NCBI RefSeq assembly: GCF_016432865.1
Contig: NC_067404.1
Location: forward strand, 85,498,001-85,562,000
Reading direction: 5' to 3'
From: Antechinus flavipes
Lineage: Eukaryota
Length of the DNA: 64,000 bases
Position 1 is the first letter of the stretch, and each line of letters starts with the position of its first letter. A program made the position numbers and the translations under genes. A model generated the notes under the pieces. That model was not told the origin of the DNA. It made no database searches and worked only from the letters and a program-made list of their open reading frames with translations. This document shows positions 12,682 to 39,200 of the stretch, piece by piece.

Positions 12682-12846
12682 TTTCTCCGAAGGGTCGTAG
12701 CCGGGCTGGTGCTTCCGCTGGTGCTGTGGCCCCCGCCCGCCCCCGGACTGGAGCTTCTGGAGGCCCCCCGGCTCATCTGGCCCCGGGGTGGCTGCGGGGG
12801 CTGTGGCTGCGGCGGCACTTGGGGGGGCTGCTGCGGCGCCTGGGGG

Positions 12847-12879
<33 letters not shown>

Positions 12880-13484
12880 GGCGGCGGTGGCGGTGGCGGC
12901 GGAGGCTGCTGCTGCGGCGCCTGGGGGGGTTGCGGCGGCGGGGGAGGCTGCTCGCTCCGGCCCCCCGCACCTCCCCCTCCCGGGTATGGAGAGGGCTCCT
13001 CGCAGGGGTGGTGGCGGCTCCCGGGGCAGTCCCGGACGGCGCGCTCGTGGTGCAGATGGCAGGGGGCGCCGCCGACGAAAGGCCCGTCTCTCTGGTGCTC
13101 CCCTCGGTGATGGTGGTGCTCTGCCCGCGCTCCGTACGCCGCCTTCCCGGCGATGGGCAGCGGCGGTGGCGGTGTCCGGTGCGAGTGCCCCGGCCGGGGC
13201 TCGCGGCGCAGGTGCAGGCGCTGGGTGTCTCGCAGGTTCTGATAGGGGCTCTCCCGGGCCTGCAGGGGCCCCGCTCCGGCCGCCGCCGCAGCGCCGGCGC
13301 GCAGGTCTCGGTTCTCCCGGCTTAGCCGGTCCACTTGGCCCTCCAGCTCCTCGATGCGCCTCCGCTGAGTCTCCAGCAGCTGCTGCTGCCCTTCGATAAT
13401 GTTATTCAGCTCCAGCAGGTACTCCACGGCGCGGCTGGGGCTCTCCCCGGCGGCCCCCCCCGCGCCGCCCCCCGACTCGTCCAT
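12682..13484 (-). CDS. IQSEC2: IQSEC2 (BRAG1, ARF6 GEF) long-isoform coding exon 1
   Basis: Translation MDESGGG...[48 protein letters not shown]...[34 protein letters not shown] matches the N-terminal coiled coil and exon end of human IQSEC2 isoform 1. ATG at 13484; donor AA|gtaagg at 12682/12681; 803 nt, phase 2. Confidence 0.96.
12849..12878 (-). repeat. Coding (CAG)10 tract in IQSEC2 exon 1
   Basis: (ctg)10 on + strand, encoding Q10 flanked by poly-Pro. Confidence 0.95.
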
Positions 13485-13823
13485 GGGGGCCCCGCTGCGG
13501 GCGCCCGGGGCCTCGGGCCACAGCCCCCGGAGGCAGCTGCTTTGGCCTCCTCCTCTTCGTCGTCGTTCTCCTCCTCCCCCGCCGCCGCCGCCTCTCTGTC
13601 CTCCCCCCCCGGGTCCCGGCGCTGGCGCTGGTGCCGGCCCGGGGGGAGGGGGGCCGCCGAGGGTTGCGGGCGCGCACGGGGGCTGCAGGCCTGGGGAGAG
13701 GGGCCGACAGGAGTCGGGGGTGGGGGGGGGTAGATAATGCGGGAGGGAGGAGGAAGAGGAAGAGGACGAGGAGGGAGGGAGGGAAGGAGGATCGAACCAG
13801 CGATCGGCCCAGCGGAGCTGGCC

Positions 13824-13916
13824 TGGGCTCCGGCTCCGGGCTCCCGGCTCCGGGCTCCCGGCTCCCGGCTCCCGGCTCCGGCTCCGGCTCGGGCTCCGGC
13901 TCGGGCTCCGGCTCCG
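13824..13916. repeat. (GGCTCC)/(GGCTCCC) hexa-/heptamer repeat upstream of the IQSEC2 ATG
   Basis: ggctccggctccgggctcccggctccgggctcccggctcccggctcccggctccggctccggctcgggctccggctcgggctccggctcc read directly. Confidence 0.9.
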
Positions 13917-16900
13917 CTGCGGAGTCACTGCGCAGTGCCCAGACCAAGCCCGCCCCTGGGCCCGCCCCGACCGGGACAGCACCGCCCTCGAGCCCGCCCC
14001 TGGGCCCGCCTCCCCCGCTGCCCTTGGCTAGCCCCGCCCCCTCCCCCTCTCTTTGCACTCATCAGTCTGTCCATCCATCGCTCGGGCCTGCCCAGAGCGC
14101 AGCATGCAGGGGGCAGCACCCCGGGGCCCAGCCGGCTGGGGCGGCGCTCCCCCTCAGTCAAGGTACCTTGCGCTCCTAGGGTCCGCCCCCCGATGGCCCC
14201 GCCCCTTCCTTCCCGATCCTCAGCTGCGGCCGCGGCGGCTCCCCGTCCTCCTGTCCCTTCTCTCCCTCCTCTTCTTCGTCCCCCTTTCTCTTCCTATTCC
14301 TCACCTCCCTCCTCCCTCTTCTCATCTCTCTTCTCCCTCTCCCCTTCTTCCTCCTCCCCCTCCCTCTCTTCCTTCTCCTTCTCTCCCTCCTCGGTCTTCC
14401 TTCTCCCTTCTTGCCCCCTCCCTCTTCTCTCTTCCTTTCCCCTCGGCCGTGGGTCCGGATCGTGCATCACGCCCCCACCTCACAAAGTACCCTGGCCAGA
14501 CTCTCGGGGCATCCTCGACCTTCGGCAAGTCTGGCAGCCTAAGGTTTCTCGGGCGGCACAGCTAGCTCCCCGGGTTGGGGCTGGCGCGGGATCCCGGACA
14601 GGAGAGGAAGGGGACAGATCTTGTAGCCCCCGGACAAGTAGATGGAAAACAAGGCTGAAGCACCTACTTGGACGCGCCCCCCTCCCCAACCTGGCTCGTG
14701 CTCAGTTCGGGAAAGTCATCGAGAGTTCGGGGCCCCTCCGATCTTCCAAGACCCGGGCGGCCGGGGCGAGCTGGGAGCCCTTGGCTGTGGGGCCTCGGCC
14801 AACGAAGGCGGTGGGAAACTTAACGGCCTGCCTTGTGCCAGGCTCCGTGATAACTGAAACACGACAACCTGCCCACAGGAAGCTTCCGCTCCACGGAGGG
14901 AGACTACTCGCCAAGGGAAGGGGAAAGGGGCAGTGGAAGGGAGGGGGGGGAGGAGGGTAAGGGCCGCTGGTGTTAAGTGGGGGCAAGACTGGGGCCCGCC
15001 CTCTCCTTAATTAGGCGCTGTGGGGCCTACGGGCCGCCCCTCAGCCAGAGGGGCCAATCAGAGAAGCAGGGGGGATTGCCGAGCTCTGGGTACAGAGGCA
15101 GAGGCGGCGATCAGGAGAACGAAATTTCCCAGTGCTGACTTTTTGGGGGTAGAGAGCTGAGATGGGGGCGGGGGGGGGGGGCGCGAGGAAGCCCCCGAGC
15201 AGTGAGTCTGGTGGCAAGCGGGCCTGTTTTCCCAGAGGAGGCGCCAGAGATGCTCGGAGCGGCAGAGCGTCCCTCCCTCTGGAGGGAGGGAGAGATCGGT
15301 GTTTAATCCAGAGGTGGCGCAGCTAATTAGGCAGCTCTGAGGAGGGCCCCCGATGGGGGTGGGGTGACCCACACAGCCTGTCACAAAGGCAGGCTCTAGA
15401 TTCTGGCCCATCTCCAAAGACGTCCCTGAACACCAGCTTTAGCACACCCACACCCCGTGGCTGCCTGGGAGGAAGTCCTCACCGCCCCAAGGCCAGATCC
15501 TGCGCCTGGGGCCCCTCCACCCAATGCCAAAGAGCCTGACCTTCAAAGCCCCACATCACTCAGGAACCACCGACCAAGAAAAAGTGGGAGACGGAGGCAG
15601 ACTGCTGCGGAGGTCAGGAGCCGGTGCCCCCATGGCCAACACACTGGCTGCTAGCCACCAACCTCCGGGGCGACTTCTCCCCCCCCCCCTTTAGTTTCAG
15701 CTTCCCTGGGCCGAATTCTTCCATGTTCCCCAAAGGCCAACTGTTCTTGGAGACCTACTCTGGGCTCCCTGGTCTGTTCGGGACACCAATCCGACCCCTC
15801 TTCCGGCTCACTTCCCCCACTGCCCAGCCCTGGCCCCACTTATTCGGCCATGCTTCATCCTCCCTTTGAAGGTAGGGGCAACATTGGGATTTCCCAGAGT
15901 CTGGGGGTGGGGTTAGGCCAGCAGGGAGAAAGTCGGGGAGGCAGCTGCGAGGGCCCTCAAACCGGGATGACTGAAGCTGGGAATGGGGAAAGACCCCCGC
16001 TCCAGGGCAGACAGAGGGAGCCTCCGGAACCCAAACCTCACCAAATGATGGAAGCCCCCAAATGTTCCTAGGGACCATGTCCGAGCTGTGGCAGAGCATC
16101 CCCGACTCCTATTGGTCCGATTGGTCACAGTGGGACACTGTAACTCGATTCTAACAGCGATGTCATTTTGGTCTTCTTCGAGGAGGAAGGATGACAACCA
16201 ACTTCCCAGTAATTAGCAGAGGTTGATGAAGGCTATACAAGAGCTCGGCAGGGCCAGGAGAGCCCCTCCCTGCCGCTTTCCACCTAGTCCCAAAGCAGCG
16301 GAGGAAAGCGAGAGGCCCAGCCTCTGGCCCCTTCCTCTCAGCTCCTGCTAACCCCATTCTTCTTCCATGATCTTCTTTCCCAAGCCCTTCACCTGCAGAC
16401 CCCTCCCTCTCTCCCTCCCTCCCTCCCCAATCTGCCCCCCTCCCCCTCCAGGAGCTCCACAGCAGTGAGAACCCCCAGTTTATTCATTTCCACTTCCCAC
16501 CACTGGCAAGACCCAAGAATCAAAGCCTGTCGCAGAACTGAGAAGATATAACCAATCACCTAAGAGCATCAAACTCAAATCCAGAGACTCTTCTCTCCCC
16601 ACATGATTCAGAGAGAAATGTGTATTAAGAAATTTAACGTACTGTGTTTAACCAGAAAAAAAGGGAAAGAAACAAGGGGGAAAAACCTGGCTAGAGCAGA
16701 AGGATGGCTGGGGGCTGCAGAGTGACCTGCAAACCCACATAGGAACATTCTATTTAACTGTATCTTTCATCACCGGATACGTTGTCATTCAGTGTGTCAG
16801 CTCAGTGTTGTGGGCAGTGTTTATGCCTGTGTCTTAGCAGAAAATGGCTCACTCGATATCTGGATGGATGAGGATCTGAGGGCCCACAGCCAGCCCCCTA

Positions 16901-16949
16901 AATGTGTGTGTACCTCAGGTCTCTCCCCCACTCCTATGGTTCCTCATTC

Positions 16950-18520
16950 TACTCTCCTATCATTTATGGGGTCCCGATCTCCCTGCCACGGCCTTATTCC
17001 CAATCTGCAACTTAACTCTGTATGGGACGGCTCTCGAGTGTTTTATAGACCCAACATGTCCAAGACTGGAGTTTGATCTCTGTTCTTCCAAGCTCACTCT
17101 TCCCCGATATTCCTTATTTTTGTTGACAACAACAGCCCCCTCCGTTCTCAACCTCAAGGCCGTTCTCGAGTCTGCTGACTCTCTAAGGCAAACTTCCAGA
17201 ATGCTTCCCACATCAACTTTCCCGCCACACGTGAGCTCCAAATTGCTCCTAATACTTCTTCCCTTCTATCTCCTCCTCATACTTCCTCACTGAAGCCTCC
17301 AGTCCCTCCACTGTTCATGGCCTCCAGAGGTAATGGGCCCCTACCCTTGTAGTACCTACAATGACTCCCATGGTCCGTTATTCAACTCCACTGGGCTAGA
17401 AGCAACTACCGTATTTGACATAATCCCACTTTCGGATCATATAGATCTGATACGTGGGGCCACCAGGACACCCGTCGGGACCTGGCTGTACTTCAAAGCC
17501 CCTTGTTGTCATCCCCCTATCTCTCCCCTCTTTTGCTCCAGTGTCTACTGATCCCCTAAGGTCAACCACTTGACTTGGGCCCTTAAGCCCATCTAGTCTA
17601 GATGCCTGCACCTTTGGACTGTCCCCACCCCCTACCTCAACTTTAGTTTCCTCCTTTCTCAGCCTAACTCCTAGAAAAAGCTGTCTACACTTGGTGCCTC
17701 CACTTTTTCACCTCCCACTCACTTCTCAACCCCTCACAATCTGGTTAATTCCGACCTCATCACTCAACTGAAATGGATCTCTCCAAGGTTATGAATGATC
17801 TCTTCTGAACAGCTAATGCTGGTAGCCTTTTTCTCAGCTATCACCCTCTGTCAGACTCAGTTTCCTCATCTATAGCATAATAGTAGTAATGTCCAGGGGT
17901 TACTCTGGGGTATATCAAGAAAGCCAATGCGTGAAGCCCTGCGGAAATGTCAGTCAGTCTTCCAGTCAGCCAGGCTCTCCGTTTTCCAGGCCCTACCTAT
18001 ACCTTGGAACATGGAGACCCACTCTCTGCTGCTGGGTTTCCTGAACATTTCAACCACCTGCCTGACCGCTCCTTCTCTGCCTCCCTTGCTGCCCTCACAC
18101 CGTGGCCACTGCAAAGGTGTCTTGGGCATTTCCTGTGTGTGTGGGGGGGAGCTCGAGCCCCTCATTTTTCCCTTGAGCTCCAGCTCTCTTGCTGGATGTC
18201 TCAACATGACATTTCCAAAAGAGAATTCATTTTTTTCACCCCTAGACCCTCACTATCTCAACCTGGATTTGTGCCCTGAACCATCCCTACTTCCTCCTGT
18301 AGCTCTCCCTTTAATCCGTTGCCAAGTTCAACGACATTTCTTGCATTCCTCCTCTCCTCACAAGGCCTTGTTCAGATCTCCATTTCTCATCCGGTCCCTT
18401 AATTCTGGACGCTCTTCTGTAATTCAGTCTCACCCCGCTGCCAAAATCATCTTCCCGAGGCTATTTCCCTGCCCCAGAAGCTTCAGATGACTGCCTGGTG
18501 TCCCTTGAACCAATTCCATG
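16950..18520 (+). mobile_element. Old fragmented LINE-2
   Basis: 17720-17810 reads LNPSQSG...HHSTEMDLSKVMNDL, resembling the L2 RT motif HSTETALxKVxNDLL; L2-like 3' sequence at 18200-18500. Confidence 0.65.
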
Positions 18521-21500
18521 GCATACGAAAGTCCCCACCTTCAGCAATCGCTTCTTTGTGAACTTCAGTGCCTGTACAGCTGGGTCTATTGACTGAGTGT
18601 GTCTCTGCATCCCCCTTCCCCAGGCCCAGCCATCTTCAGGAGTCAGCCTCTTCCCGCACAAAGCCTTTTCTGGCCCCCTCCAGCTGTCTCCTCAATGGGT
18701 CAATGGTGCTCAACCCAAGAGAACGGAAGCGGCACCGCTGAAGTGACGTGGCTCCAACGTGTCGGAGGGCTGTACGTCTTCCCAAGCGATTGGCCCTTGA
18801 GTTACATTTCCCTCCCACTTCAGCCTCTGCCTCCTCAGTTTCCTCAACTCCAAGACAATAAGAACAGCAGCGACTTCCAAGTGGTTACCGTGAGGACCCA
18901 GGGATAGGACATCACTAGAAGTGTTCAGTCCGGCACCTGGAAAGGCTCCTTCCCTCTCCCCCTCCCCCTCTGCAGCCACTTACGATCACTGGGGAGGACA
19001 GCCAATGGCAGCCTCCAGCCCTTTTCCATCTTTTTCTTGCACTTTCCTTGTTGGAATCAGGGGCACCAGCCTCCCCGTTTGCCTTCTCAGCTCTGGTCCC
19101 TCAAGACACCTCTTCTGGGACCTCGGCCCCCTCTCAATCTCTCTCAGGGGCTCAGTTTCCCATGTGTCCAATGGACTTCGCCTCTGAGGTCAGAGGTGAT
19201 TCAGGTGAACTCCCCGAGAAAAGAAGGTAAGCAGATGTGCCAGGGCCCCAAGGGAGCCAGCTCCAAGGAGTATGATTCACAGGGACAATGGGACAAATGG
19301 GGGCCGGGTCCAAAGAGCTAAGGGGTATCCTCCACTCCCAAAGGCAAGGCTCGGCAGCTCTTACCCCATCTCTCATGCTTGGACACACATGCGCACCAGC
19401 CTCCCTCCTGGCTTCCTAGCTCACCCACACAGTCTGCCGTGGGGAGGGCAGCAGTGCTGCTAGCTTGCATGTGGGTTCCAGGAAGATGGGGGGGGGGGTG
19501 AAGGATAGGGCACAAACCAGGTTAGAACTGTGAGGGCTAACAAGGCCCAGACTGCTGGTTGGCAGGCACAGGAGACAACAGGAAGTCTCCTGGGGCACTG
19601 AGCGAGCTGCCGGCAGGAAATCTTCAGGAAAGAGCCGGGTACAGCCACCGGGCTAAGCTCAGTCTAGCCACTGGGGTATGTATTAACGGCTGTGTGACCT
19701 CGGTCAAGTCCCTTTCCCGAGCTCAGTGAAACAAAGGAGCCAGACCACAGAGCCTCCAAGGCCCTCTCTCAGTCAGGCAATCTGCTCTGAAATTCTGGCC
19801 AAGGACCCCGCTGAGGCTGACTGGCCTGGCAGCACCGTTGTGTTCCGCAGCCCCCCGCTGGGCAGGGATGGGCAGAGCACAAGAGCTCCAGCTCACAGGC
19901 CCTGAGGTTTCTGGGGAAGAAACCTGAAGCCACCCACCACCTGCCTGCCGCCCGCCAGCCTGCCAAGCAGGCCCTCCAACCCCCATCTTAGCTCCTAACA
20001 CTGGCTAGGCTGCCAAATTGGTTCCCATGACAATGGGTTCCAAAGAACTTGGCAGAGAGGGATTTTTAACCCTACAGGTGCCAGCCAAGAGCGCCCCACA
20101 TTTCATTCCCCGAATGCCCCCCCACCAGGCCCCCAGCCCGACAGGGAAAGCAGTGGGCCCGGTTCCCGATCCCCAAGGCTCTACACCCAGAAGGAGGCCT
20201 CAGACCCACCTCACTTAGAGAACAAGGGGCCTCAGAGAGCAATCTAGTATGACCCCAGCTTCATTCCTGCCGGGATCCAGTTCTGGACCTACCAACTCCA
20301 AAGCCCCAAGGAGACACTTTCAGGATCTCCCAGTTCTCTGGCTCAGGACTGGGCACCGACAAGCAGGTCTGAAGGAATGGGAAAGGCTAAGCCGAGGGAC
20401 GCCAAGTACAAGTGGCCTCCAGGGTCCTGACTGGCTTAGAATCTGGAGAGCGGCCATCTGGGTCTCATCCCTCCCTTAGGTTACAGCCCACTCAAGGAAG
20501 AATTCCTTGCCCAAATGGCCTGGGACTCAGGAGGCCCAGTGGCTCAGTGCAGCCGTGGACTGGGAGGAGACCCCACTTCTGGTCATCTCACAATCTCCCC
20601 AGCCAACAGAGATGAGTGAGTGGTGGCCCTGTCGGGGCATCTGTTTTTCTTACAAGCGGCCATCAGGCCTCTCTCAGAAAACCACAGGACTAGCTACGGG
20701 CAACTACCCGCTGCCCCTCATCTTCGGACAGCGATGAAGGAAACTGGCATTGGATTCATGCAAGAGAAAGCTTCCCAACTTTATTGCGGGATATACCCGG
20801 CCCTCAGGGAGGCGGGGGGCTCCTGCCACTCTGCACCAAGAAGGGATATCCCCCTCCCACTGTTTCAGTGGCATAAAAGCCCCGATTCTCAGAGGAGATC
20901 CATGAGGGCAGGGCCCTGACCTGCAGGCCCCAAGTCTGTTGGGGGGCTCGGGACTCGGAGTTGAGCCAGGCTGGCATCTAGATCTCCCATGAGGCCAAAC
21001 ATCAGCCCCTCGGTGACAGCACAGTCCCCTTGCCGGAAGAGCCGGTGATCTCTTCCCCTACCATAGGCCTTGGCAACGTGCCCACTGGACTCTCCTTGGA
21101 CTGTCCACTGACCGTGCTTTGTCTAGAAGCTAGCTCTGGAGCGCCCTCGAGTGCTGGAGGCAGGGCCGATAATAAAGGGCACTGAAAGCCAAAGGGCAGA
21201 ACCCTCAAATCCCCGGCAACCCCAGCTTAAGCCCTTACCAGAAGGCTCGTGGACTTGGTCTCGGCTGGTTCCATGCCTGAGCTGCAGATGCCAGGCTGGC
21301 CCCCCAGGGCCAAGAACCAGGCTCAGACCTCTCTAGCTCCTTGGAAGCACCACTGTGAGCTGGTGCAGATGCCTGTGCCCCCCTTACCACCTAACATCTC
21401 CCAGAACTCGTCCCGAAGACTCTTCCTGTCAGAAGCAAAAATGTTTTTATTGGGCTCAATTTCTGCTGCCTGAAGCATCCCTCTCCTCCCAAATCTCTTT

Positions 21501-21989
21501 GGCCCAGTGTCCTGCAAGCTCCAGGTCCGGCCAGTGGAGGGGGACGGGGAACCCTGGCTTTCTGGTGCCACCAAGGCGACTGGCCTTCTCCTCCCAGAAA
21601 GCCTTGAGCCCCAGCACTCTCCCTGGCCTGGCCCCAGTCAATGAGTCAGTCTCAGTGATGGCTTCCCAGGCATAAATATTGGGGGGCACTATAGGCAATC
21701 TCAGTAACAGCTTCCCAGGGATAAATGCTGGACAGTTCCTAGAAGCCTCTCTGAAGAGGGTGGAATGACCCAAGCTGCAGCTAGAGGCCAGGCCCACATG
21801 TGTTCTTAAATGGAGAACAAAAACCTGGGGAAGAGCCCTTTGAGATGATGACGATGGTACAGCTAGCAGAGGGGAATATGGAAAGTTCCGAGGCAGAAAT
21901 TTATGTGAAGTTTCAAGATAAGGAAAGAAGGCGCTTCAGCTCAGGTCTCTGACAACAGGCCCAGCCTAGCCTGCCTCTTCTTGGCCAGT

Positions 21990-22170
21990 GAACCCCACAG
22001 GGGGTCCCACAGTACACAAAGCACTGGGCCTGGATCCTGGGCAAGCCATTTCACTTCCATTTTATGCCTCAGTTGCCCAAACTATTAACATGAGGGTCGG
22101 AGTGACAACGCCCACTCCCCAGAGTTATTGTGAGGATCAAATGGAAAGCACTTTGTTCAGTGCAGAGTTC
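21990..22170. mobile_element. MIR-like SINE fragment
   Basis: ctgggcaagccatttcac...gcctcagttgccc...cagagttattgtgaggatcaaatgg. Similar fragments at ~25975-26075, 27050-27170 and 28885-29070. Confidence 0.55.
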
Positions 22171-23764
22171 AAGGCTACCATTGGCTTTCTCCCCCCTGCT
22201 GTGCTGCTCTCCTAACCTTGTTTCACAGGCTATCATCTTCTGGGGAGGGGGAACTATACCCCACCTGGCCATCTTCCCACCAGGTGGGCCAGGTTCTCAT
22301 CACTGAGCTCCCGCTGGCACATGGCAGGAAGGTAGGAGAAGTTCCAACTAATAAGGGGCAGTCCCAGCCAGCCTGGCCCTACTCTCAACCTGTTGACTTC
22401 TCCATCCCTTTCTTCAATGCCAACTCCCACATGGGAACGCCCTCCCACTCTTCTTTCAGCCTCTTCTTCACGAGCTCCAGGCTGGCATGGGATAGTTGGG
22501 GACTCCCAAATCTCAGGCACTGGGCCTCGCGATGAGGGGAGCTTGGCCCAGTGGCCCACTTAGCCAGCCAGCTGACTGGGCTTCTGACTTAGTTACACCT
22601 TCAGCACTTTAAAGGTATAAGCAGGCATTTTTTTTGGGGGGGGGCACCCAGCCTTCCCGCTTTGTACAACAGTAGCCACCTTTCAAACCCTAGCTTCAGG
22701 TGATTTCTGGGCCCAATCGCCCACAGCCTCCAACTCACATTCCCCACACCTTTAGTGTACATGTAGCACATATTTAAGGCTCATTTTTTAGCTGTTGGGG
22801 TACATGTGTATGTGTGCAGTGCAAACGTGTTCTATAGAGAGAGATGGGGGGGGGGCACCACAGGAACTTCTTAGCCATTACTTTGTTCAACCACTTCCTT
22901 TTATAAAGAAGGAAACCGGTCCGGAGATCTTTACAGCTGACTCCAGTGGGCTCTCCAGCCTGACTGGAGCTCCGGCGCCTCTACGACTCTCTTCTTTTTC
23001 AGCTCCGTTTCAGTCTCGTCCGTGTTCCTCTGCCAGCTTCCCTCTCCCGGCTGGCACGCCGGCCGCCCCCTCCTTCCCTCCCCCCCGCCCACCCCGGGGC
23101 CCGGGCACAGCGAGGGTGGGTGGGTGGGGGGGGCCACTTTGTCGTCATCCTTCACCGCTGCCTCAAGGGAGCATCTGAAGACTGCGGACTTCGTGAGAAG
23201 AGCCGGCCCCAGAGCACCCCAAGCGGAAGAGGGAAATAAATGGACAGAGCAACTGCTAGCTGAGTCCGAGGGGAAGGAGGAACAGGCTTTGTGGGCATCC
23301 GACTTGGCCAAGTTCCTCCTTATTTCTGGAGGAGAAAGGGGCAGCCGGCCGGGTGGGAAGCGCCCGAAAGGGTGCTGAGAACATGCCCACCCCGTGCCCT
23401 TGAACTCCTGCGGAGAACCAGCCCCTGGCCTTCCCCTCTCCTCCCAGTCTCGGGGCTGGCACCTAGGCCTCGGCTCACTTTCTAAACAAAGCCACGTGTC
23501 CCCACAGTGCGCTTCCCCCCCACCCCCACCCCTGTCAGAGGATCCCCAATTGGCAGTCTCCCCTCAGCTCGGAACCTCCTCTCGACTGGAGCAGGCGCGG
23601 GACTTCAGCAGGGAGGAAAGGGGGGGGGGGGCAGGGAGAGGTGTCGCCAGGAGGCGGAGCCCCTAGGACGACTTTCGCCTGGCCGGGACACACTTCTTAA
23701 ATTAGGGGGAGGGGGGCGGCCATCTGTGACTCGGGGCCGGGGTCGACTCGTGCTATACCCCTAC

Positions 23765-23876
23765 CTGAGCCGTTCGGGCCGGAGAGGACGCGAGCCTCTG
23801 GAAGGGCCTACCCAGTGATGTGCCGACCTTCGTGGGCTTTGGAGTTCTCGATTCGGCGTAGTGCTGGAGAGCCCGC
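23765..23876 (-). pseudogene. SMC1A: Decayed SMC1A exon 1 remnant
   Basis: Minus strand reads ...ATC GAG AAC TCC AAA GCC CAC GAA GGT CGG CAC ATC ACT GGG [tagg] CCC TTC CAG AGG CTC GCG TCC TCT CC GGC CCG AAC GGC TCA G|gtagg = IENSKAHEGRHITG/PFQRLASS/GPNGSG versus SMC1A [29 protein letters not shown]. Donor at the SMC1A exon-1 position, ATG lost, +4 and -1 frameshifts, syntenic position head-to-head with RIBC1. Confidence 0.85.
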
Positions 23877-24418
23877 GGCATCGGGGGGTGGGGGGAACGC
23901 GAAAGGGTAAAGAGCAGTGAGGGTGACAAGACCTAGAAGCCCGCGCAAACACTGGGCTGGCGATCGCAAGCGCTAGCTAAACCGCGCGAGAGGAGTCGCG
24001 TGCGTGCGCATTCGGGAAGGAATAGGCTAGACACCGGAACACGGACTCCAGAACGTAACTTTCGTGCTGCGCGTGCGCGAACGAGCAGGACGAAGGCGAA
24101 GGACTTTATTGGCACCAACTCAAAGCGCTCTGGGACTTCTTGGCGCTCCTGCGCCGGCGCGCGGTCCCGAATGAGGCGGTCCAGGGAGGAGATGGCCCAG
24201 CTCGCCTCCTCCCGTCTGTGTGAAGGATCTGGGGAGACTCCAGGTTCTGTTCCCGAATCGGCTCCAAGGTCTCTCGAGACGAGGGAGGGGCCCCGGCGAA
24301 CTGGGAAGAGAAACCGGGAAAAGCTTCTCTTTCCCATGTGGGGCAGGCTAGACCGGAAGGGGCGAGGGAGGGGCTCCCAGCTCCCACCGGAACTCACGCA
24401 AGAATCCCCCTTTTGTCC

Positions 24419-24458
24419 ACTGCCATGGCAACGGTGACGCTATCTCTCGTTATATAAC
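24419..24458 (+). promoter_or_regulatory. RIBC1 promoter: RFX X-box, CRE half-site, TATA-like palindrome
   Basis: ACTGCCATGGCAAC (12/14 to X-box GTTGCCATGGCAAC) at 24419-24432, TGACG at ~24435, GTTATATAAC at 24449-24458, inside a CpG island (~23400-24750). X-boxes are typical of ciliary genes. Confidence 0.7.
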
Positions 24459-24459
24459 C

Positions 24460-25024
24460 GCGGGAGCAGACAACTCTCCGGAGTCGGAGCTAGCCCGCTC
24501 GGGAGGTGAGGACATGTGGGGAGAGGGCTGGGGACTGACAAACGGCGGAAAAGGGGACAAGCAGTGAAGGGGGGGATTATACCTGGCCTGGGGCGGGGCG
24601 TGAAAGAAGGGGAGGCGGCACCGAGGAAAGGGAGACCGTTAGGACTGGATCTGGGCGGCTAGGGGACCTTCGCCAGCTAGGTCCCCTTTTCCCAATATAG
24701 CCCACAGAAACATGCCATCGCTTTCGGCACATCATGGGAGGCTAGACCTAAAGACAAAGACTTGTGAGGGCCGTCGAGTCTCAATTTACTGGGTGGGGGA
24801 GGGCATTGAGAGCTAGAGACAAGAGACAATAGGCCAGCATGGCAAAAGCAGTCAAAGCTCTAGTCAGGATGGGATCCCAAGGCCAGAGCGCTGGGGGCTG
24901 AGTGGTAGGAGCCGGATCACAGTCCCAACTCTGTTCCCTTCTCTTTCAATTAGACATCGAGCCAAGAGTGGTTTCAGAATAGTGGAGGACGTTCTGAAGC
25001 GCGCGCATTGAGGAGCAAATTCAG
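24460..25024 (+). other. RIBC1: Putative non-coding 5'UTR exons of RIBC1 (~24460-24505 and ~24955-25024)
   Basis: Donor ggag|gtgagg at ~24506; acceptor tctttcaattag|acatc and donor ttcag|gtgaga bound a ~70-nt exon. Inferred from splice signals only. Confidence 0.5.
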
Positions 25025-25776: not shown

Positions 25777-28427
25777 ATGTTCAAAGTAGACATCCAATCT
25801 GAACAGAAGCAGGCTGTGGCCATTGAAGCCCGAAGAACCCGAGAAAAACAGAGGCAGAGCCGAATCTTTAATGTTCAGAACCAAGTGATTGGGGTGAGTT
25901 TCCCTAAGATAGCAGAACTGAATCCATCTCTGTGAAGAAGGTCCAGGCACTTTCCCCCCCAAGAGCAGTTTAGCATCGGACTCACTCCCCTTATTTTATA
26001 GAGCTGGAAACTGAGGCTAGATTGAGTTGGCTGGTGTCCCATAGGAAGGGGAGGGGGGCAACAAGAGCTGACTAGAAGCTAGGCCTCCAATTTCTGGTGG
26101 TTCTTTGCCCTGATGCTTCCTTTCCCCTTCTCCCCTTCCGTCCAAGGCCCAAAGGTCTCCCTGGAGGGAAGGAACTAACCTGGTCCACCCTACCCTAGCC
26201 CATCCAAGTCCCAGCTGGCAATTTAAAGCAGCAGGGGTTCTTGAGTGGACTTACTCCTTGATCTGTGGCAGGTGGACATGGAAGCCTTAAAAAACCAGGT
26301 GATGGAACGAAGAAAGAGAGAGGATGCTGAGCGGGCTCGTGAAGAAGCCTTCGGTAAGAGCCCTGGGGGGTCTGCCCCCGAGGGTCCAAAGAGGGAACCC
26401 TGGTTCCTTGACCACCTGTAACCCTTCCCTTCCAGATGCTAACTGTGTCCGGTGTGACTTAATGGCCCAAATGCTGGAGAAGGAGGAAGCGCAGCGTGCC
26501 CGACAGTTAGCTCAGCAAGTGCAGGCCTTTCGTGAGAAGGAGCAGCAGCCCCAACGCTGCCGAGAGTTTGACCCAGGAAGACTGCAGAAAAAGCCAGTAA
26601 GAGCGGGTGACCAGGACCCCTGCTGCGGACCCTCCAGCATGCAGTACTTTGCGGGGGAAGATCTGAACTGCACTACACGCCGGCGTCTACAACAAGAACA
26701 ATCCCGTCGTGATTTGGGCCGTCAGTGGGAGGAGCACCTCCAGGCCAAGAGGCAGGAGAAGTATTTGGGTGAGTGGGGCAATGGGGGGAGATGGGGGCAC
26801 AGATAGGGAACAGCCTTTCCTTCTCTTTCTACCAACTAGGGAAGTGTGGTTAGGAGCAAATGCTCCCAGAGTGGACAGCACAAATCTCAGCTCTGCCCCT
26901 GTAACCTTGGCAAGGCACTGCTGGTCAGAGCCAGACCCCGTGCTAGCTCCTAGAGGCCTTGTCTGTCCTTTTGCCGAGTCTGTTCAGCCGTTGCCGTCAT
27001 CCACTCATCGGCCCAAAATGCTAGCTAGGCCCGAGCACTCAAATCCAGAAACCTATTAGCTGGGGGTTCTGGGCAAGTCGCTTCATCTGTCTCCCTCAGT
27101 TTTCTCAACTGTAAAATGGAGGACAGCACCTCCCTCCCCACAGTGGTACATTGCTTCTGTGGTGCTTGCTAGATCGAGGTCTCCTAATCCGTTTGTTTTT
27201 TCCTTTCTCCCAAGCCCCCACTGAAGTCCTCTACATCACAATCCCCCCCCCCCAATCCACCCCACCCACTCTCCTCTGTACTGTTAGCCTTCAAGTTGAC
27301 TTCCCAAAGTGACTTCAAATGGTCTTTTTTCCTGCCGTTATGATCAGTCACAAAATCGAAAATAAAACTGAAGTAATAATACCGCCCCCCTCCCAAAATC
27401 TGTGTTCACTGAATCAGTTGCTCAGTCCCCTCCCTCCCTACAGATATCTTGGAGGGCCAGAGGCAGATAGAGATGGATCTACGCGCTGTTCACCTGGACG
27501 AACTGGAGGCTACCCATCGTAGAGTCAAGGATGTAGCCATGGCAAATTACAACAGGTCTCAGGTACTGTCACCCCCGTCACCGGGCAGGCCTGGTTATTT
27601 GAATCCAAACTTTCAGAAATCCTGCTTGGGAACACAAATCCCTGCCTGCCTGATTGGCAGAAGGGCAGACCCCACCACAGGAGGGCTCCAGAATCTTGGA
27701 GAAAGGGTGCTCCCCTGGCTCTGTGGAGGGTTTGGGCAAGGACACCAATCCTGGGGCTGTGGGCCTACTAAGGTCACTTTGGGGAGGCCCCTTCCACTCT
27801 ATGAGCCTGGGTGGACAGCACCCCTAGGGCCATGGTTGGGGCAACTCCTAAGCCATGGCTTCTCCTGCCTTCCCCCCAGGCCACGGAAATGGACATACAG
27901 CAGCAACTGGCCCGCCAGAGGGAGCAGGATGACAACCTCACTGAAATCTATAATCACCTGACCAGTGACATGCTGACTGAGAAGCGCCCTGCTTCCTCAA
28001 AATCACAAAAAGTGATCCCGAAACACTGGAAGGGCATGAGCCCTGAACAAATAGCTGCCATCCAGAAGGAACAGGCAGTACAGCGCCTTGAAGCCCAACA
28101 CCGGCGGAAGGCCGAGAAGCGCCAGGAAGCCGAGTGGGCCCGTCAGGAGCAGATGGCTGCTCAGACTGCTTGCCAGCTGGAACATGAGCAACAAGTCCAA
28201 GCACAGAAGCTGCGTCGGGACCTGGACGCCTACAACAAGGAGCTGGCTCAAGAGCAGCAAGCCAAGTGAGTGAGGACGGAGGAGGAGGGTGGGGGGCGGG
28301 GGCCCTGAGTGAGGCAACAGAGCTGACACAAGCTTTACCTTTCAGAAAGGACTACCTGGACAAAGTGGTGTACACCAACGAACCCACATCCCAGTTCTAC
28401 CTGCAGTTCAACACCAGCAGCCGCTGA
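25777..28427 (+). CDS. RIBC1: RIB43A-like with coiled-coils protein 1 (complete, 6 coding exons)
   Basis: Exons 25777-25893, 26272-26353, 26436-26768, 27444-27562, 27880-28265, 28346-28427; all GT/AG and phase-consistent. [33 protein letters not shown]...QYFAGEDL...HWKGMSPEQ...[19 protein letters not shown] matches RIBC1. Confidence 0.95.
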
Positions 28428-28680: not shown

Positions 28681-30792
28681 TTAGGGCTGCATGCGGATAC
28701 CTCCATCCAGACGGATCACCTCACCGTTGAGCAGGGGATTTTCCACCACGGCCTGCACAAGGTGGGCATACTCTGCTGGATCTCCCAGGCGGCTGGGGAA
28801 GGGCACCTGACGGGCGAGGAAGGAGCGGACTTTCTCAGGGAGTCCCAACAGGAGGGGTGTTTCAAACAGGCCTAGAAAATAACATTTACTGAGTGTCCAC
28901 TGTGTGCCCAAGCACTCTACAAATAGGCCCTCGGTTGATCCTGATGGTAATCTGGGGAGGGAGGTAGGTGCTCTTCAAGACAGAAGGTTCTGTGGCTTGG
29001 CCACGATCAGCCACCATAACTCGGGATGAGTTGCAACTTGGGGTCTGCCTGACTCTAGGCCCAACTTCACCCCTAGACTCTTAAGGCAAGTGGGGATTTT
29101 GAAATTTTGAGGCCGTCAGCCCTGTCCCAAGAGTTCTGACTTTAGCCAAAGTCCCTTCCCTGCCCTGTTTCCCCCTGACAAATGGGGGGGAGGGGGAGGT
29201 ATTAGACCACCTGAAGACCTCTTTAAAGGGTACATTTCATTTCTCAATTCTGAGAAATGAAAAGTTGGCCTGCTAGGAGTTGGGGAGAAGAGGGAAGTTG
29301 GAGATGCTGAAACTTACCTGGAGCAATGGTGACCACCCGGATCCCCATGGGGGCCAGGTCCCGGGCCACAGGTAGGGTCATCCCCACAATGGCCCCTTTG
29401 GATGCAGAATATGCAACCTGTCCAACCTGGGAACAAGGTGTGAAAGTGAATCGACTGTAACTGGGCCCCCAGGCTCATGCAGGGAGAGCTCTGGAGGCTG
29501 TAGGCATACCTGGCCCTCAAAGGCAGCCACGCTGGCTGTGTTGATGATGACACCCCGGTGGCCACCCTCATCGGGCTCATTCTTCCCCATCTCCCCGGCA
29601 GCAAGGCGGATCACGTTGAATGTGCCAATCAGATTGACCTGGGGGGCAGAAGGGGGAAACGAGTCAGTCTTGGGCTCAGTGGGCCTGGGGTTTAAAGCCT
29701 GCCTTAGGGTAGCTAAGTCACCTTAAAACTTCAGTTGGTTCAAACCAGGGGGCCTCACATGGGATCGATGGGCCCCAGGGTCCTTTCTAACTTTCCCAGA
29801 AGCAGAGGTGGGGAGGGGGAGCCAAGGGCTGGAGAGCCTTGATCCCCTGGGGGGGGGACATTGTGACATACCTGGATCACCTTCTGGAAGGCCTCCAGGG
29901 AGTGTGCTTCGTTCTTCTTGAAGTTGTAAGTCTTGGAGGCCACAGCTATGCCAGCGCAATTAACGGCAATGTCTATGCGGCCAAATTTTTCCTGGGCCAA
30001 GGTCAAGGCCCCCTGCACCTCTCCTTCAGAGGTTACCTTGGAGGAGGAAAGTGGGCATCAGCTCACCACCCAGGGTAGTATGGCCCGCCTCCCCCTCCCC
30101 CCCCACAACTCCCACAAACTAGGGAAGGGCCGGCTCGACTTTGGTTTTCTGGGCAAGCTGGCCCTTTTTAGAAGCTGGACTCCTGTGCCCTCCCACCTCA
30201 AGTAGGGGAGATGCAGACTTACATCGGTGGGGGCGAAGGCGCAGGAAGGACCCAGCTCCTTCGCCAGTGCTTCACCAGAGCTGTGAGGTAAGTCCACGAT
30301 GACAGCCCGAGCCCCGTTCTTAACCAGTCTCCTGACCGTGGCCTGGCCCAGGCCTGATGCTCCGCCTGTCACCACACCAACCATGCCCTGCAGGAAGCAG
30401 TCAGTGAGGGGGGGAGGGGCGGGAGAGAAAGTAACAAAGCCTCCTCCCCCATCCCCCCCAGCCTATTAGTTTCCCTGGCTGGGAAGGTGGTAGGGGGAGG
30501 AAGAGGCCACGGCAGCTCCGTCAGCTCCGAGTCAATGGGACCGGAAAGGCTCCGATCACACAGAACCGCAGAGCTCCCAAATTACTGAGGGGAAAACGGG
30601 CTAAACTCAGGCAAGGTCAAGTGATTAGGCCAATGGCGCGGCGTTGGGGCCGTAAACCACACGTCCCCGCATGGATCGGGCCCCGACCCCTTTAACCGGG
30701 GGGAATGCCCTCCCCTGCCCTACTAGACCAGGCTGGGCATGAGGCGATCGGAGGGGTACCTGCAGGGTGCGGATGCCTCGCGTCGCCGCCAT
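28681..30792 (-). CDS. HSD17B10: 3-hydroxyacyl-CoA dehydrogenase type 2 / MRPP2 (complete, 6 exons)
   Basis: Exons 30760-30792, 30223-30387, 29872-30036, 29510-29638, 29318-29426, 28681-28871; GT/AG and phase-consistent. [25 protein letters not shown]...NCAGIA...[22 protein letters not shown]...[13 protein letters not shown] with SDR TGxxxGxG and YxxxK motifs. Confidence 0.98.
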
Positions 30793-31032: not shown

Positions 31033-31574
31033 GATCTACAAGGGGAGGGAGGGAGTAGAAAAGGAGCTGACCCATTCCCCGACGCCCCGCTCCACGTCTA
31101 GGAAATTGCGGTAGCCAATGGGCGGGGAAGAGGCCGCGGGAGCCGCCGCTGATTGAACCGGATTTGACGGAGGGGGGGGAAGGGGAGGGGAGAAAGGGGA
31201 AGACGGAGACCTCTTCCAGCGGCCCTCCCCCTGCCCGCGGAAGTAGCAAAGGCCACTGGGAGGGGGAGTCTCACCCAAGCCGCCGCTGATTGGTCTGCGT
31301 GAGCGCGGCTTTCGTGGCCCGACAGCCCCGGGGCAGAATGGAAGAAACCGCCAAGGAAAAACGCTGATTGGCCAGCTCTGCCCCTCCGGGTCTCTTGGCG
31401 CCCTCTCAAGGAGGAAAATTTATGAAAAAACTACTCAGATGAACGGGAGGAGAAAAAGATTTATTGGAGGGGTGGGGACCGGGGTGGGGGGAATGAACAA
31501 GTCCTAAAGGAGCCTGAGAAATTGGGGGAGGGGGCAGCAATGAACATTCAGAGCTTGAGAAAAATAAGATTTAT

Positions 31575-33303
31575 ATATTTAGGAATCTATCTGCCAAGGG
31601 AAAATCAGAAACTTTATGAGCAAAACTACAGAACTCTTTCCACACAAATAAAGTCTGATCTAACCAACTGGAAAAATATTAAATGCTCTTGGATTGGGCG
31701 AGCAAATATAATAAAGATGACCATACTACCTAAACTAATCTATTTATTTAGCGCTATACCAATCAGACTCCCAAAAAACTACTTTGATGACCTAGAAAAA
31801 ACAAAGTTCATATGGAAAAACAAAAGGCCAAGAATTTCAAGGGAATTAATGAAAAAAAAACAAATGCAGGTGACCTAGCTGTACCAGATCTAAAACTATA
31901 TTATAAAGCAGCAGTTACTAAAACCATCTGGTATTGGCTAAGAAATAGACTAGTTGATCAATGGAATAGGTTAGGTTCAAAGGGCAAAACAGGCAATAAC
32001 TTTAATAATACAGTGTTTGACAAACCCAAAGACCCCAGTTTCTGGGATAAGAATGCATTATTTGACAAAAATTGCTGGAAAAATTGGAAATTAGCATGGC
32101 AGAAACTAGGCATTGACCCACACTTAACACCGTACACCAAGATAAGGTCAAAATGGGTTCATGACCTAGGCATAAAGAATGACATTCTAAATTGGAAGAG
32201 CATAGGATAGCTTACCTCTCAGACCTGTGGAAGAGGGAGGAAGTTATGACCAAAGAAGAACTAGAGATCACTATTGACCACAACATAGAAAATTTTGATT
32301 ATATCAAATTGAAAAGTTTTTGTACAAACAACAAATGCAAACAAGATTAGAAGGGAAACAATAAACTGGGAAAACATTTTTACAATCAAAGGTTCTGATA
32401 AAGGTCTCTTCTCCAAAATATATAGAGAACTGAGTCTACTACACACCTGTCAGATTGGCTAGAATGACAGGGAAAGATAATGGGGAATGTTGGAGGGGAT
32501 GTGGGAAAACAGGGACACTGATACATTGTTGGTGGAATTGTGAACACATCCAGCCATTCTGGAGAACAATTTGGAATTATGCTCAAAAAGTTATCAAACT
32601 GTGCAAACCCGTTGATCCAGCAGTGTTTCTACTGGTCTTATACCCCAAAGAGATACTAAAGAAGGGAAAGGGACCTGTATGTGCAAGAATGTTTGTGGCA
32701 GTCCTGTTTGTAGTGGCTAGAAACTGGAAAATGAATGGATGCCCATCAATTGGAGAATGGCTGGGTAAATTGTCGTATATGAATGTTATGGAATATTATT
32801 GTTCTGTAAGAAATGACCAGCAGGATGAATACAGAGAGGCCTGGAGAGACTTACATGAATAGATGCTAAGTGAAATGAGCAGAACCAGGAGATCATTATA
32901 TACCTCAACAACGATACTGTTTGAGGACGTATTCTGATGGAAGTGGATCTCTTCGATAAAAAGAGCCTTAATTGATCAAAGATGGACAGAAGCAGCTACA
33001 CCCAAAGAAAGAACACTGGGAAATGAATATAAACTGCTTGCATGTTTTTCTTCCCGGGTTATTTCTACCTTCTGAATCCAGTTCTCCCTGTGCAACAAGA
33101 AAACTGTTTGGTTCTGCACACATAGATTGTATCCAGGATATACTGTAACCTATTCAACATGTAAAGGACTGCTTGCCATCTGGGGGAGGGGGTGGAGGGA
33201 GGGAGGGGGAAAAATTGGAACAGAAGTGAATGCAAGGGATAATGCTGTAAAAAATTACCCTGGCATGCGTTCTATCAATAAAAAGTTATTTTTTAAAAAA
33301 AAA
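31575..33303 (+). mobile_element. 5'-truncated LINE-1 (ORF2 3' part, 3'UTR, A-rich tail), frameshifted
   Basis: YLGIYLPRENQKLYEQNY...CSWIGRANIIKMTILPKLIYLFSAIPI; PDLKLYYKA; CWRGCGKTGTLIHCWW are L1 ORF2 motifs. G-rich 3'UTR and A tail; flanked by gagaaa(aa)taagatttat on both sides (probable TSD). Confidence 0.95.
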
Positions 33304-36280: not shown

Positions 36281-39200
36281 CTATGCCGTCTGGAACCGCA
36301 GCCATAGGGTCAAGAGTAAGAGGAAGCCCAGAAGGCCCCTGGGCTCTGCCACTGCTGCAGATGTGACAGAGACGGGCTTGCCCACTGACTGACTGAGCCA
36401 GCTGTGGTCAGCCTGGGCAGAAGAAGTCTTGGAGATCCATGGGAAGTAAGGAGCCAGGAGGAAGGTAAGAGACCTGATGCTGGTGAGCCCAGTCTGCCTC
36501 CAGGTTCCATTCTTACCCCGTGAGCGGCACAACAGGGCACTGCCTGGGCCCATGAGATCCTGTGGCACAAACCCAGTACCCCGAGGCTCACACATGTCAA
36601 GCCTTGGGAAGTTGAGCCCCTCCCCTAGTTATAAGCCCGGCTCCCCTCACCGACTTTTTTGTTTCCCATCCTCTCCCATCCCCCACATTGAGGTTGGGGC
36701 TCAAGTTCCTGCCCTCTTCCCCTCTGCCCTCCAACCATGAGTGCGAACTCCCCGAGTGGGCCTCCGTGTCACTCGCCAAAGGGGCCAGGGGTGGGCCTTG
36801 GTGCTGCTCACCAAAGCCACTTGGTATTCTGGCACCCAGGGAGCCAGGCATAGCACGGAGTTCCTGATGCTGCCAGGGAGGTGGCGGGCACAGGACAGAG
36901 CATCCTTCACCTGAACGTGCAGGGCTTGTGGGTTCCGGTCCGTCTCACCTGCAAACAGCCGGGAATCAATCTCCCTGGCCCCATGGCTTTGGGTGCCAGC
37001 GGGTGAAGGGACTAGTGTCGAGCTGGAGGGAGGAGGACACGGCTGGGCATCCTGAAAATGACCTAAGGGTGGGGAGGGAGCAGGGTGAGTAAGGGCAGAA
37101 TCTCAAGGACTTGGGAGCGGGCCAAGGGCACGTCTGCCTGGCATCGGACAGCAGAGGTCACACGTGCGCTCCAATGACTAAGGAGTCCGAGCCGCTGCTC
37201 CTCTGTACCTCCATGTGGAGGAGCAGGGTGCCAGGCGGCACTTTCTGAAGCTGCTGAGGGTTTTCTCAGGATTTTTCCTTGTAATCCAGCTGCTAGGGTG
37301 CCTCTCTCCCCAGTCGCTTTCTTCATCTGCCGCCTCCTTTCTCTTCTCCCCCTTCTCCTTTCCTCTTCCCCTCTCTCCCCCCATCTCTGGCACTCGCTCA
37401 CTCTCCCTTTTTCCTTCCTCCTCCCACCCTTCCCCCTTCTGCCTCCCCTCCCGCCCCTTCAACCAGCCTGACACCGGGAAGCACCGAGCATGGGAAAAAT
37501 GAGGGCGCTGCCTCCTTCGGCCTGCTCGATCTCTACTACCCCTCGGGCTGTGTCCGGCCCTAACCCTTTTCTCTCGTTCCAGGGCCCACAGCTGTTGGGA
37601 TGCTCTTTGTGAAGCAGGAGCCGTGGCTGTTATTTGCTTAAAGCGAACAGTAAGCGCACCACAGTGTGCTGGCCGTGCTCCTGGGCTGCCACCCACAGGG
37701 TCACGGGATTAGCGGAGGGAGTGCTGCGTCCTGGAGGATCTGCCAGCCAGAATGGGGACCTTCCTTTGGCCCGGCTCAGGGCAGATGGTCACATGGCAAA
37801 TACGGCTTAGGGAGTTCCCGAGGCCTCTTGTAAAGAGAACTCCCTAAGGGGCGCCCCGGCCTACTTCAGGATCGCCCGGAAAGGCGAGCCGCCCATCGGT
37901 TGGTGTGGACGCCCTCCTATGGCAGGTTTGGGGCCCGGGGCCGAGGTCTCGTTCGGAGATCTGGTGGCTGTGGGGCCCACGACGGGTCGATTCCAGCTCA
38001 CCCTCTCGGAGTTCTCGGGGCCCTGTGAGCCAGCACTCAGCTTTGTTCACGTCATCCACGTGGCCAACGGGGGCCAGCGGCTGGCTGGAGCCCAGGGGCT
38101 TCTGCAGGAGGACAAGGGCCAGGTCGTTCCAGGGGACCCCATCCACCAACTGGTAGCGCTCGTGCAGGACCACGCTGGAGACGCGGGCGACGGTCATGTT
38201 GCCACCGGGCTGTGGCAGCCCCAGGAATACTGCCATGTTCTCTGTCCTCCTGTCATGGGATGAGAAATTATGAGTTTTTATACCTTGAATGGGCTGCCTG
38301 GATCTGTCCAGTCGTGGGATCTTTAAGCGACTTTAAGAGAACGTTGGGTACCTTTGCACACTGCCCCCCAACATTAGCTATATAAGAGATACGGGGCCTA
38401 GTTCTGCCTGCCACCTTTGAGCCCCGATTCGCTGAGGGACCCCCCGGCCGCCTCCTCTCTGAGGGATGTCTAAGCGAGCCGGCCCCACGAGGAGCCTCCC
38501 ACCCCCACCCCCTGTCGGCTCAGCACTCACATGTGCCGGATACAGTGGGCTGAGGTGAGGATCCAAGACGGGCTGAGGATGGAGCCGCCGCAAAGTCTGC
38601 TGTCACAGGTCACGATCAGTGCTTGCCAGGGTGTGGCGAAGCTCAGAGAAATCCGATTCACCAGGGCTGCGTGTGGGCACAGGGGAGAGTGCATATTGGC
38701 CAAGCCCCTGCCCCAGCCCCTGGGGTCTAGTACTGCCCCACATGAGTCAGGGAGCCTTCTTCCTCCTGGTTCTGTTTCCCCAGGCCTGGGAGCATCGGTG
38801 AGAGGGAGGGGGGAGTCTCACTCACCTTCAGGTTGCAGCAGGGAAGAGAGGGTGGGCCTGGGGGCAGTCTGGACCCAGGGGGGGTGCTGGGATTTCGTGG
38901 AGGCCTTGAGCCAAAGGCTGAAGGGGTGGATACGGCTGAAGACGTAGGGCCGAGTGCAGGTCTCGTCAAAAGCGGTGAGGACCCCCATCTGTACCCAAGG
39001 GGCGTCCTCTGGGTGTGGCTTTGGGCGGCACATCAGTGGGGCTCCCAGGTCTCCCTGCCAGGGGGAGGCAGGAGGTGGTGAGGGCCAGGGTCTGGGAGGG
39101 AAGGCAGCCTGGGCCAGTGGGGGGCACTTATCACCTTGCAGCTGCTCTGGCCCGTCACTTTCTTGGCCTCCACACAGAAGGCCATGGAGCTCTCAATGGG

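Follow-up and report, generated by a model that had tools for sequence, protein, structure and literature searches.

Eutherian SMC1A encodes an essential cohesin subunit. The gene is X-linked and dosage-sensitive and partially escapes X inactivation. In eutherians it is located on the minus strand between IQSEC2 and RIBC1. Loss of a parental copy after duplication or relocation is known from orphan retrogenes and from gene movement off the X chromosome. Two further systems are close to the locus described here. Duret and colleagues reportedly found in 2006 that exons of Xist derive from the protein-coding gene Lnx3. In 2013 Almada and colleagues are said to have described a U1-PAS axis, in which promoter-proximal 5' splice sites favour productive elongation of one arm of a divergent promoter.

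In the marsupial Antechinus flavipes, the place beside RIBC1 where SMC1A would be expected is occupied by a remnant of its first exon. The DNA analysed, hereafter the window, comprises 64,000 nt of the A. flavipes X chromosome. Its genes follow each other in the order IQSEC2 (minus strand), approximately 10 kb of sequence ending in the relic, RIBC1 (plus) and HSD17B10 (minus). All features are collected in Table 1. When a gene is relocated or replaced, a leftover exon can be reused in a non-coding transcript; this is a known kind of event, of which marsupial SMC1A would be a new example. No published account of a marsupial SMC1A relic was found in the literature covered, which was incomplete.

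Table 1. Features of the SMC1A relic locus. Positions refer to the window unless another locus is named.
Feature	Position	Strand	Start codon	Evidence or remarks
IQSEC2 long-isoform exon 1, coding part	12684..13484	minus		PDB 9m46_A, E 5.6e-22
Former SMC1A slot, ~10.3 kb	13485..23764	minus		between IQSEC2 exon 1 and relic
Former intron 1, first 60 nt	23705..23764	minus		65-83% identity among marsupials; invariant GATGG core
5' splice site CAG/GTAGGG	23759..23767	minus		boundary 23765/23764; invariant in 6/6 marsupials
SMC1A exon 1 relic, coding part (codons 1-36 and first base of codon 37)	23765..23876	minus	GCG	alignment; +4 and -1 indels, TAG
Former SMC1A core promoter in CpG island	23940..24176	minus		61-79% identity among marsupials
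RIBC1 non-coding exon 1, 3' end	24476..24505	plus		donor 24505/GT spliced to 24954 in RNA-like X6 contig
RIBC1 coding region, six coding exons	25777..28427	plus		100% identical to Antechinus flavipes RIBC1 (P0157)
HSD17B10	~28681-30792	minus		called gene downstream of RIBC1
Relic in tammar, bilby and sugar glider			GTG	36/36 codons in frame
Relic in koala			GCG	in-frame 9-nt deletion
Relic in opossum			GCC	TAA stop and frameshift
Koala LOC144455020, three exons	L001 8670-8616, 8531-8217, 5454-5378			protein mapped to locus

A disabled SMC1A exon 1 beside RIBC1

A sequence-only reading of the window had proposed a fossil of SMC1A exon 1 on the minus strand, and its coordinates proved exact by direct reading of the letters. 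On this strand GCG (23876-23874) stands in place of ATG. The reading frame survives in the pieces ..RRIENSKAHEGRHITG, PFQRLASS and GPNGSG, with a TAG (23810-23808) behind the first of them, and the relic ends with CAG (23767-23765) followed by GT (23764-23763). It measures 112 nt, compared with 109 nt in platypus and Tamandua. The multi-species alignment contains a 4-nt insertion, which creates the TAG, and a 1-nt deletion near 23789. The frame pieces, both lengths, the two indels and the replaced start codon are thus as previously read, and the donor believed to be retained is found at the expected boundary. This phase-1 donor (codon 36 plus one base) occupies the same alignment column in all eight species compared. 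With GCG, TAG and two indels, exon 1 of Antechinus has neither the start codon nor the open frame of a functional gene.

The assignment to SMC1A was examined with two kinds of comparison. The relic pieces, joined by X, were compared with the PDB using phmmer, and the top match was SMC1A residues 8-37 with an E-value of 6e-4. The same residues were aligned to the DNA with a frameshift-tolerant protein-to-DNA aligner written for this analysis; the relic scored 75, and the next-best site on both strands of the 64-kb window scored 37. Dinucleotide-preserving shuffles of the 2-kb CpG island (n=1000) gave a mean of 27.9 with a standard deviation of 3.5 and a maximum of 42, and a Gumbel fit to these scores yields P ~2e-8 for the relic. 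The proposed identity is therefore upheld by the phmmer match and by a score clearly above those of the GC-matched controls. Furthermore, Logan contigs from run X1 show 0 differences and 0 gaps over 23164-24550, so that the indels are not slips peculiar to the assembly, with the reservation that the X1 animal may be the assembled animal itself. From these alignments, minus-strand 23876-23765 is identified as a disabled copy of SMC1A exon 1, with similarity to the SMC1A N-terminus that takes in the Walker A region. A processed (retro) pseudogene was considered and rejected, because the relic stops at the genomic donor, conserved intron sequence continues beyond it and the site is syntenic.

The ancestral locus and its neighbours

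The plus-strand gene at 25.8-28.4 kb is a member of the RIB43A family; the relatives closest to it carry the name RIBC1. The identical A. flavipes protein P0157 is encoded approximately 1 Mb from the end of CM028223.1 (86.6 Mb; assembly GCA_016432865.2). On the other side, the IQSEC2 exon 1 frame encodes the N-terminal coiled coil; the former SMC1A slot is bounded by this exon on the left. The motif TATATAA at 24451-24457, about 50 nt upstream of the donor of RIBC1 exon 1, may mark the start site of RIBC1, separate from the old SMC1A core promoter.

Outgroup and marsupial loci were retrieved by way of an RIBC1 exon, which led to full-length RIBC1 proteins and from these to the loci with 10-kb flanks. 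In platypus (L005) a 1233-aa product with SMC_N and SMC_hinge domains lies upstream of RIBC1 on the opposite strand. The eutherian Tamandua (L009) has the same 1233-aa SMC_N/hinge product in the same position and orientation. Exon 1 is intact in both species, with one R/Q difference noted, and is followed by GTGAG. Since platypus and Tamandua both carry an intact SMC1A next to RIBC1, the ancestral mammalian state was SMC1A head-to-head with RIBC1. The intact gene at the same slot in both outgroups also substantiates the earlier suggestion that SMC1A once sat at the Antechinus locus in the eutherian orientation.

Several observations concern the distal part of the window. A LINE-1-like reverse-transcriptase frame fragment (31400-33000, plus strand) lies between HSD17B10 and a trypsin-domain gene, which is called at 36281-43582 on the minus strand and encodes 1399 aa. 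A trypsin-domain gene of ~1350-1400 aa follows HSD17B10 in Antechinus, tammar (L003), bilby (L004) and sugar glider (L008). In opossum HSD17B10 is followed by HUWE1, and in koala by a gene with a product of >2985 aa. Consequently, the distal gene order differs among marsupials. Satellite DNA makes up the last 20 kb (44000-64000, up to the end of the window); it is an array of ~26-nt base units (AATGAAGATGAGAGGCAGAGATCCCC), on which higher-order periods of ~129, 207 and 370 nt are superimposed.

Distribution among marsupials and age of the relic

The relic and its donor are present in six marsupials, namely Antechinus, koala, sugar glider, tammar, bilby and opossum, with relic scores of 72-116 compared with a background of ~40 or less. 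Trichosurus was not counted; its locus has an N gap (L007 9171-9670) just upstream of RIBC1 and non-homologous sequence beyond. None of the six species has an ATG, which is replaced by GCG, GTG or GCC. Platypus and Tamandua have the same base at 92 exon sites, and at eight of these sites all six marsupials have a derived base in common. Among the eight is the A>G change that alters the first base of the ATG, and six of the eight are at first or second codon positions.

The shared loss of the start codon together with the eight substitutions indicates that coding constraint was lost before the marsupial crown, that is, by the comparison of these six loci, before Didelphimorphia and Australidelphia separated. 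This split dates to ~80-90 Ma. Derived sites make up 23-31% per lineage and 8.7% are shared, from which a crude estimate of 110-130 Ma is obtained for the relaxation if a constant rate is assumed. The relic can thus be regarded as common to marsupials and not specific to Antechinus. A survey of orthologous loci for shared disabling changes had been suggested by the sequence-only reading, and it reveals a start-codon loss shared by all six species, opossum included.

Loss of the gene body

The probes used for SMC1A covered exons 1-3, so that decayed relics of exons 4-25 could have escaped them. Neither exon 2 nor exon 3 of platypus was found in any marsupial locus or in the 64-kb window (scores <=43). 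On platypus itself exons 2 and 3 score 308 and 190, and on Tamandua 289 and 190. No SMC domain was detected by Pfam in 14 of the longer frames that lie on the minus strand between IQSEC2 and the relic, and an Rfam search of window positions 1-44000 gave no match. In opossum, tammar, bilby and Antechinus the 10 kb upstream of RIBC1 contain no called gene; koala and sugar glider have short gene models without known domain there. The slot is collinear among Antechinus, koala, tammar and opossum. For comparison, SMC1A exons 1-3 alone span 4-5 kb in platypus and Tamandua. Since exons 2 and 3 are traceless and the slot measures only ~10 kb, the gene body was removed and did not decay in place. The earlier description of the gene as pseudogenised in place is hence appropriate for exon 1, which is disabled where it stands, and not for the gene body. 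Taken together, the marsupial and outgroup loci place the departure of SMC1A from its ancestral X slot more than ~80 million years ago, with its promoter and the disabled exon 1 left behind next to RIBC1.

A SMC1A orthologue covering 1233/1233 aa is contained in a rat kangaroo transcriptome (PMC4529305). As a full-length SMC1A is expressed and the slot is devoid of it, we infer that a working copy existed elsewhere before the local body was lost. A query with exon 2 for this live copy returned unnamed 54-108-aa fragments on short contigs, none of which could be assigned to a marsupial.

Other elements were observed inside the slot. Two non-coding blocks (17350-17961 and 19398-20175) are 74-81% conserved from Antechinus to koala, tammar and opossum and have no Pfam or Rfam match. 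They could be IQSEC2 regulatory elements, exons of a divergent transcript or remains of the SMC1A 3' UTR. A stretch of 528 nt (18898-19425) is present in the window and in an Antechinus-like organism A. It is absent from organism C, which has AG instead, in DNA and in RNA-like contigs alike. Judged from these contigs, a recent indel separates these Antechinus-like species. At 21951-22150 and 22951-23150 the contig depth is 10-40x that of neighbouring bins in all DNA runs; these positions correspond to short interspersed repeats.

Conservation of the relic block

Parsimony changes in the marsupial relic are spread evenly over the codon positions (25/23/27). In the alignment koala and tammar differ by 9 non-synonymous and 2 synonymous substitutions, and the differences between koala and tammar and between tammar and bilby are nearly all amino-acid-changing. 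Judging from this pattern, the relic is without coding constraint, even in the lineages with an open frame.

The relic is nonetheless conserved as DNA. Its pairwise identity among marsupials is 67-90%. The adjacent 7 kb are alignable to 4-86%, with identities of 67-78% in the alignable part. Both flanks are unalignable, on the 5' side over the 63 nt next to the relic and on the other side in the intron beyond +60. Together with the beginning of the old intron (60 nt) and the old core promoter, the relic forms one conserved island. The CpG island that contains the old core promoter has a CpG observed/expected ratio of 0.64-0.73. Motifs of the GCGCACGCGC / GCGCATGCGC-type and TCTCGCG are found in the old core promoter. 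In human, YY1 binds inside SMC1A exon 1 (PMC5114649), which is in line with exon-1 DNA carrying promoter function.

The splice donor and transcription

The most constant part of the island is the old 5' splice site. Its nine columns show 0 parsimony changes, compared with 0.69 per site in the exon. The longest unchanged run in the island corresponds exactly to donor positions -3 to +6, and the columns on either side have changed. The a-priori probability that nine specified donor columns are all invariant is ~0.001, given 45% invariant columns elsewhere. In a scan permutation over all 159 columns, P = 0.09 is obtained for an unbroken invariant stretch of >=9. On these two values the donor looks to be under purifying selection.

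A transcript model is available for koala. The uncharacterized RefSeq gene LOC144455020 (P0270, 148 aa) encodes the one protein obtained in a search with the koala frame across the relic. Brute-force reconstruction of this model gave 24 solutions, and the exon structure was therefore taken from the protein itself. The middle exon takes in the entire relic, read in the former frame of SMC1A, and its end coincides exactly with the ancestral CAG/GT; the next exon has a strong polypyrimidine-AG acceptor. This downstream exon aligns in tammar, sugar glider and opossum, and no alignment was obtained in Antechinus. The 148-aa reading frame itself is most likely an annotation artefact, since no coding constraint is seen. 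The koala model, taken as annotated, points to a minus-strand transcript that is spliced at the fossil donor. In sugar glider a domainless 239-aa model (L008 4842-8555, minus) spans the relic on the SMC1A strand.

For the genus Antechinus, run X6 was analysed. It comes from organism C, a congener that is ~2% different from the window, and comprises 203 M letters of contigs. One contig contains the junction 24505/GT..AG/24954, which joins RIBC1 exon 1 to exon 2; hence X6 behaves as an RNA run. Its contigs are unbroken over 19842-23068 and 23128-24505, with mean depths of 29 and 46, respectively, and a depth of 7 further left. The donor at 23765 is crossed unspliced; none of the six contigs ends there and no junction was seen. 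It thus seems that the genus transcribes the relic region, although the X6 contigs are strandless and genomic DNA carry-over is possible. For the RNA check at the donor that had been proposed with the original reading, the outcome is divided: the relic is covered in X6 and the koala gene model uses the donor, but X6 is unspliced at 23765.

Proposed origin and fate of the relic

We consider it fairly probable that the relic is the orphaned promoter and first exon of SMC1A, kept by selection as the 5' exon of a divergently transcribed and probably non-coding RNA. In the marsupial ancestor SMC1A was located between IQSEC2 and RIBC1 and shared a bidirectional CpG-island promoter with the latter, an arrangement retained in monotremes and eutherians. 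After a working copy had arisen elsewhere, the local body from intron 1 onward would have been removed, and the promoter would have stayed together with exon 1 and ~60 nt at the start of intron 1. The start codon of exon 1 was lost on the marsupial stem, and later evolution proceeded free of coding constraint; the block would nevertheless have been kept by selection as a DNA or RNA element. It is proposed that the old promoter fires in the direction opposite to RIBC1 and that U1 snRNP is still recruited by the former 5' splice site. The relic would then serve as the 5' exon of a divergent and most likely non-coding spliced transcript, and this transcription unit may help to keep the shared CpG island active for RIBC1. 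Selection would presumably act on the transcript or on the U1 site, and body removal following relocation is the presumed route of the loss. The conservation of the relic could also stem from a promoter-proximal DNA function or from low mutation in an unmethylated CpG island, and not from RNA.

The strongest competing explanation is an inert fossil with no present function. Its survival would be due to ~110 nt being still recognisable after ~100 My and to its place in an unmethylated CpG island beside the RIBC1 promoter, with slow mutation and selection against deletions. The 23-31% of derived sites per lineage, which is within the range of old neutral DNA, the even distribution of changes over codon positions, the unspliced X6 contigs and the scan-wise P value agree with this explanation. 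It does not readily account for a relic that, in the pairs compared, shows higher conservation than the part of the neighbouring 7 kb that can be aligned and that has unalignable sequence on both sides, nor for an invariant run that coincides with donor -3 to +6 between changed columns, nor for a koala transcript model that splices at this donor. We therefore regard the inert fossil as rather unlikely, and the element is probably kept. Alternatively, the old promoter and exon 1 could form an upstream non-coding first exon that is spliced to IQSEC2, at least ~10 kb downstream. Relic and IQSEC2 share one strand without an intervening gene, the donor is conserved and the RNA-like depth falls from the island towards IQSEC2 (46, 29, 7). 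However, the koala model joins an exon 2.8 kb away and stops there, X6 has no junction from 23765 and no called Antechinus IQSEC2 product reaches the relic, which makes such a leader improbable.

It is hardly conceivable that the relic is an artefact, a chance P-loop match or a descendant of the SMC1B-RIBC2 pair. Assemblies are prone to error in GC-rich islands, the P-loop motif GPNGSG is generic and SMC1B is also arranged head-to-head with a RIB43A-family gene, RIBC2. Nevertheless, the X1 contigs do not differ from the window, the ATG-less relic recurs in six independent assemblies, and the match reaches past the P-loop with a score far above those of the shuffles. The SMC1B-RIBC2 pair was rejected on account of the neighbour, which is A. 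flavipes RIBC1 in every residue and is flanked by HSD17B10 and IQSEC2. A broader version of the preferred reading, in which SMC1A was relocated on the marsupial stem, maybe off the X or as a retrocopy, and its promoter and exon 1 were exapted into either a selected non-coding unit or an IQSEC2 leader, is put forward only tentatively. If true, it would be a marsupial parallel to the transition from Lnx3 to Xist.

The relic of an orphaned SMC1A promoter and exon is a datable physical mark of the departure of this gene from its ancestral X slot before the living marsupials split. It bears on the evolution of therian X gene content and on dosage constraints, and raises the question of where marsupial SMC1A resides at present and whether its move was DNA- or RNA-mediated. 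It is also a natural experiment on one arm of a bidirectional promoter after removal of its gene: promoter, exon 1 and above all the 5' splice site persist, and the coding information decays.

Comparison with known systems

The nearest relative of the relic is the intact SMC1A-RIBC1 promoter of monotremes and eutherians. Position, strand, distance to RIBC1 and donor position are the same, and the relic is in the same length class as the intact exon 1 with its 109 coding nucleotides. In contrast to the latter, it lacks the start codon, everything from exon 2 onward and coding constraint, and its stops and frameshifts are lineage-specific. The donor changed from GTGAG, as in platypus and Tamandua, to GTAGG on the marsupial stem.

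Parental-copy loss after duplication or relocation provides a second comparison. There, too, an essential gene has gone from its ancestral slot and is still expressed. With respect to orphan retrogenes and movement off the X, marsupial SMC1A may be a retrocopy or a DNA-level copy, and may be X-linked or not.

Like Xist and Lnx3, the locus contains decayed pieces of an X-linked coding gene that would be reused as non-coding exons, with promoter and 5' end kept. It differs in that one exon survives, the transcript is putative and SMC1A lives on elsewhere, whereas Lnx3 was lost. The resemblance to the U1-PAS axis lies in a conserved U1-type site ~100-450 nt from the start region of the CpG island, on the non-protein arm; here this putative U1 site is recognised from its sequence.
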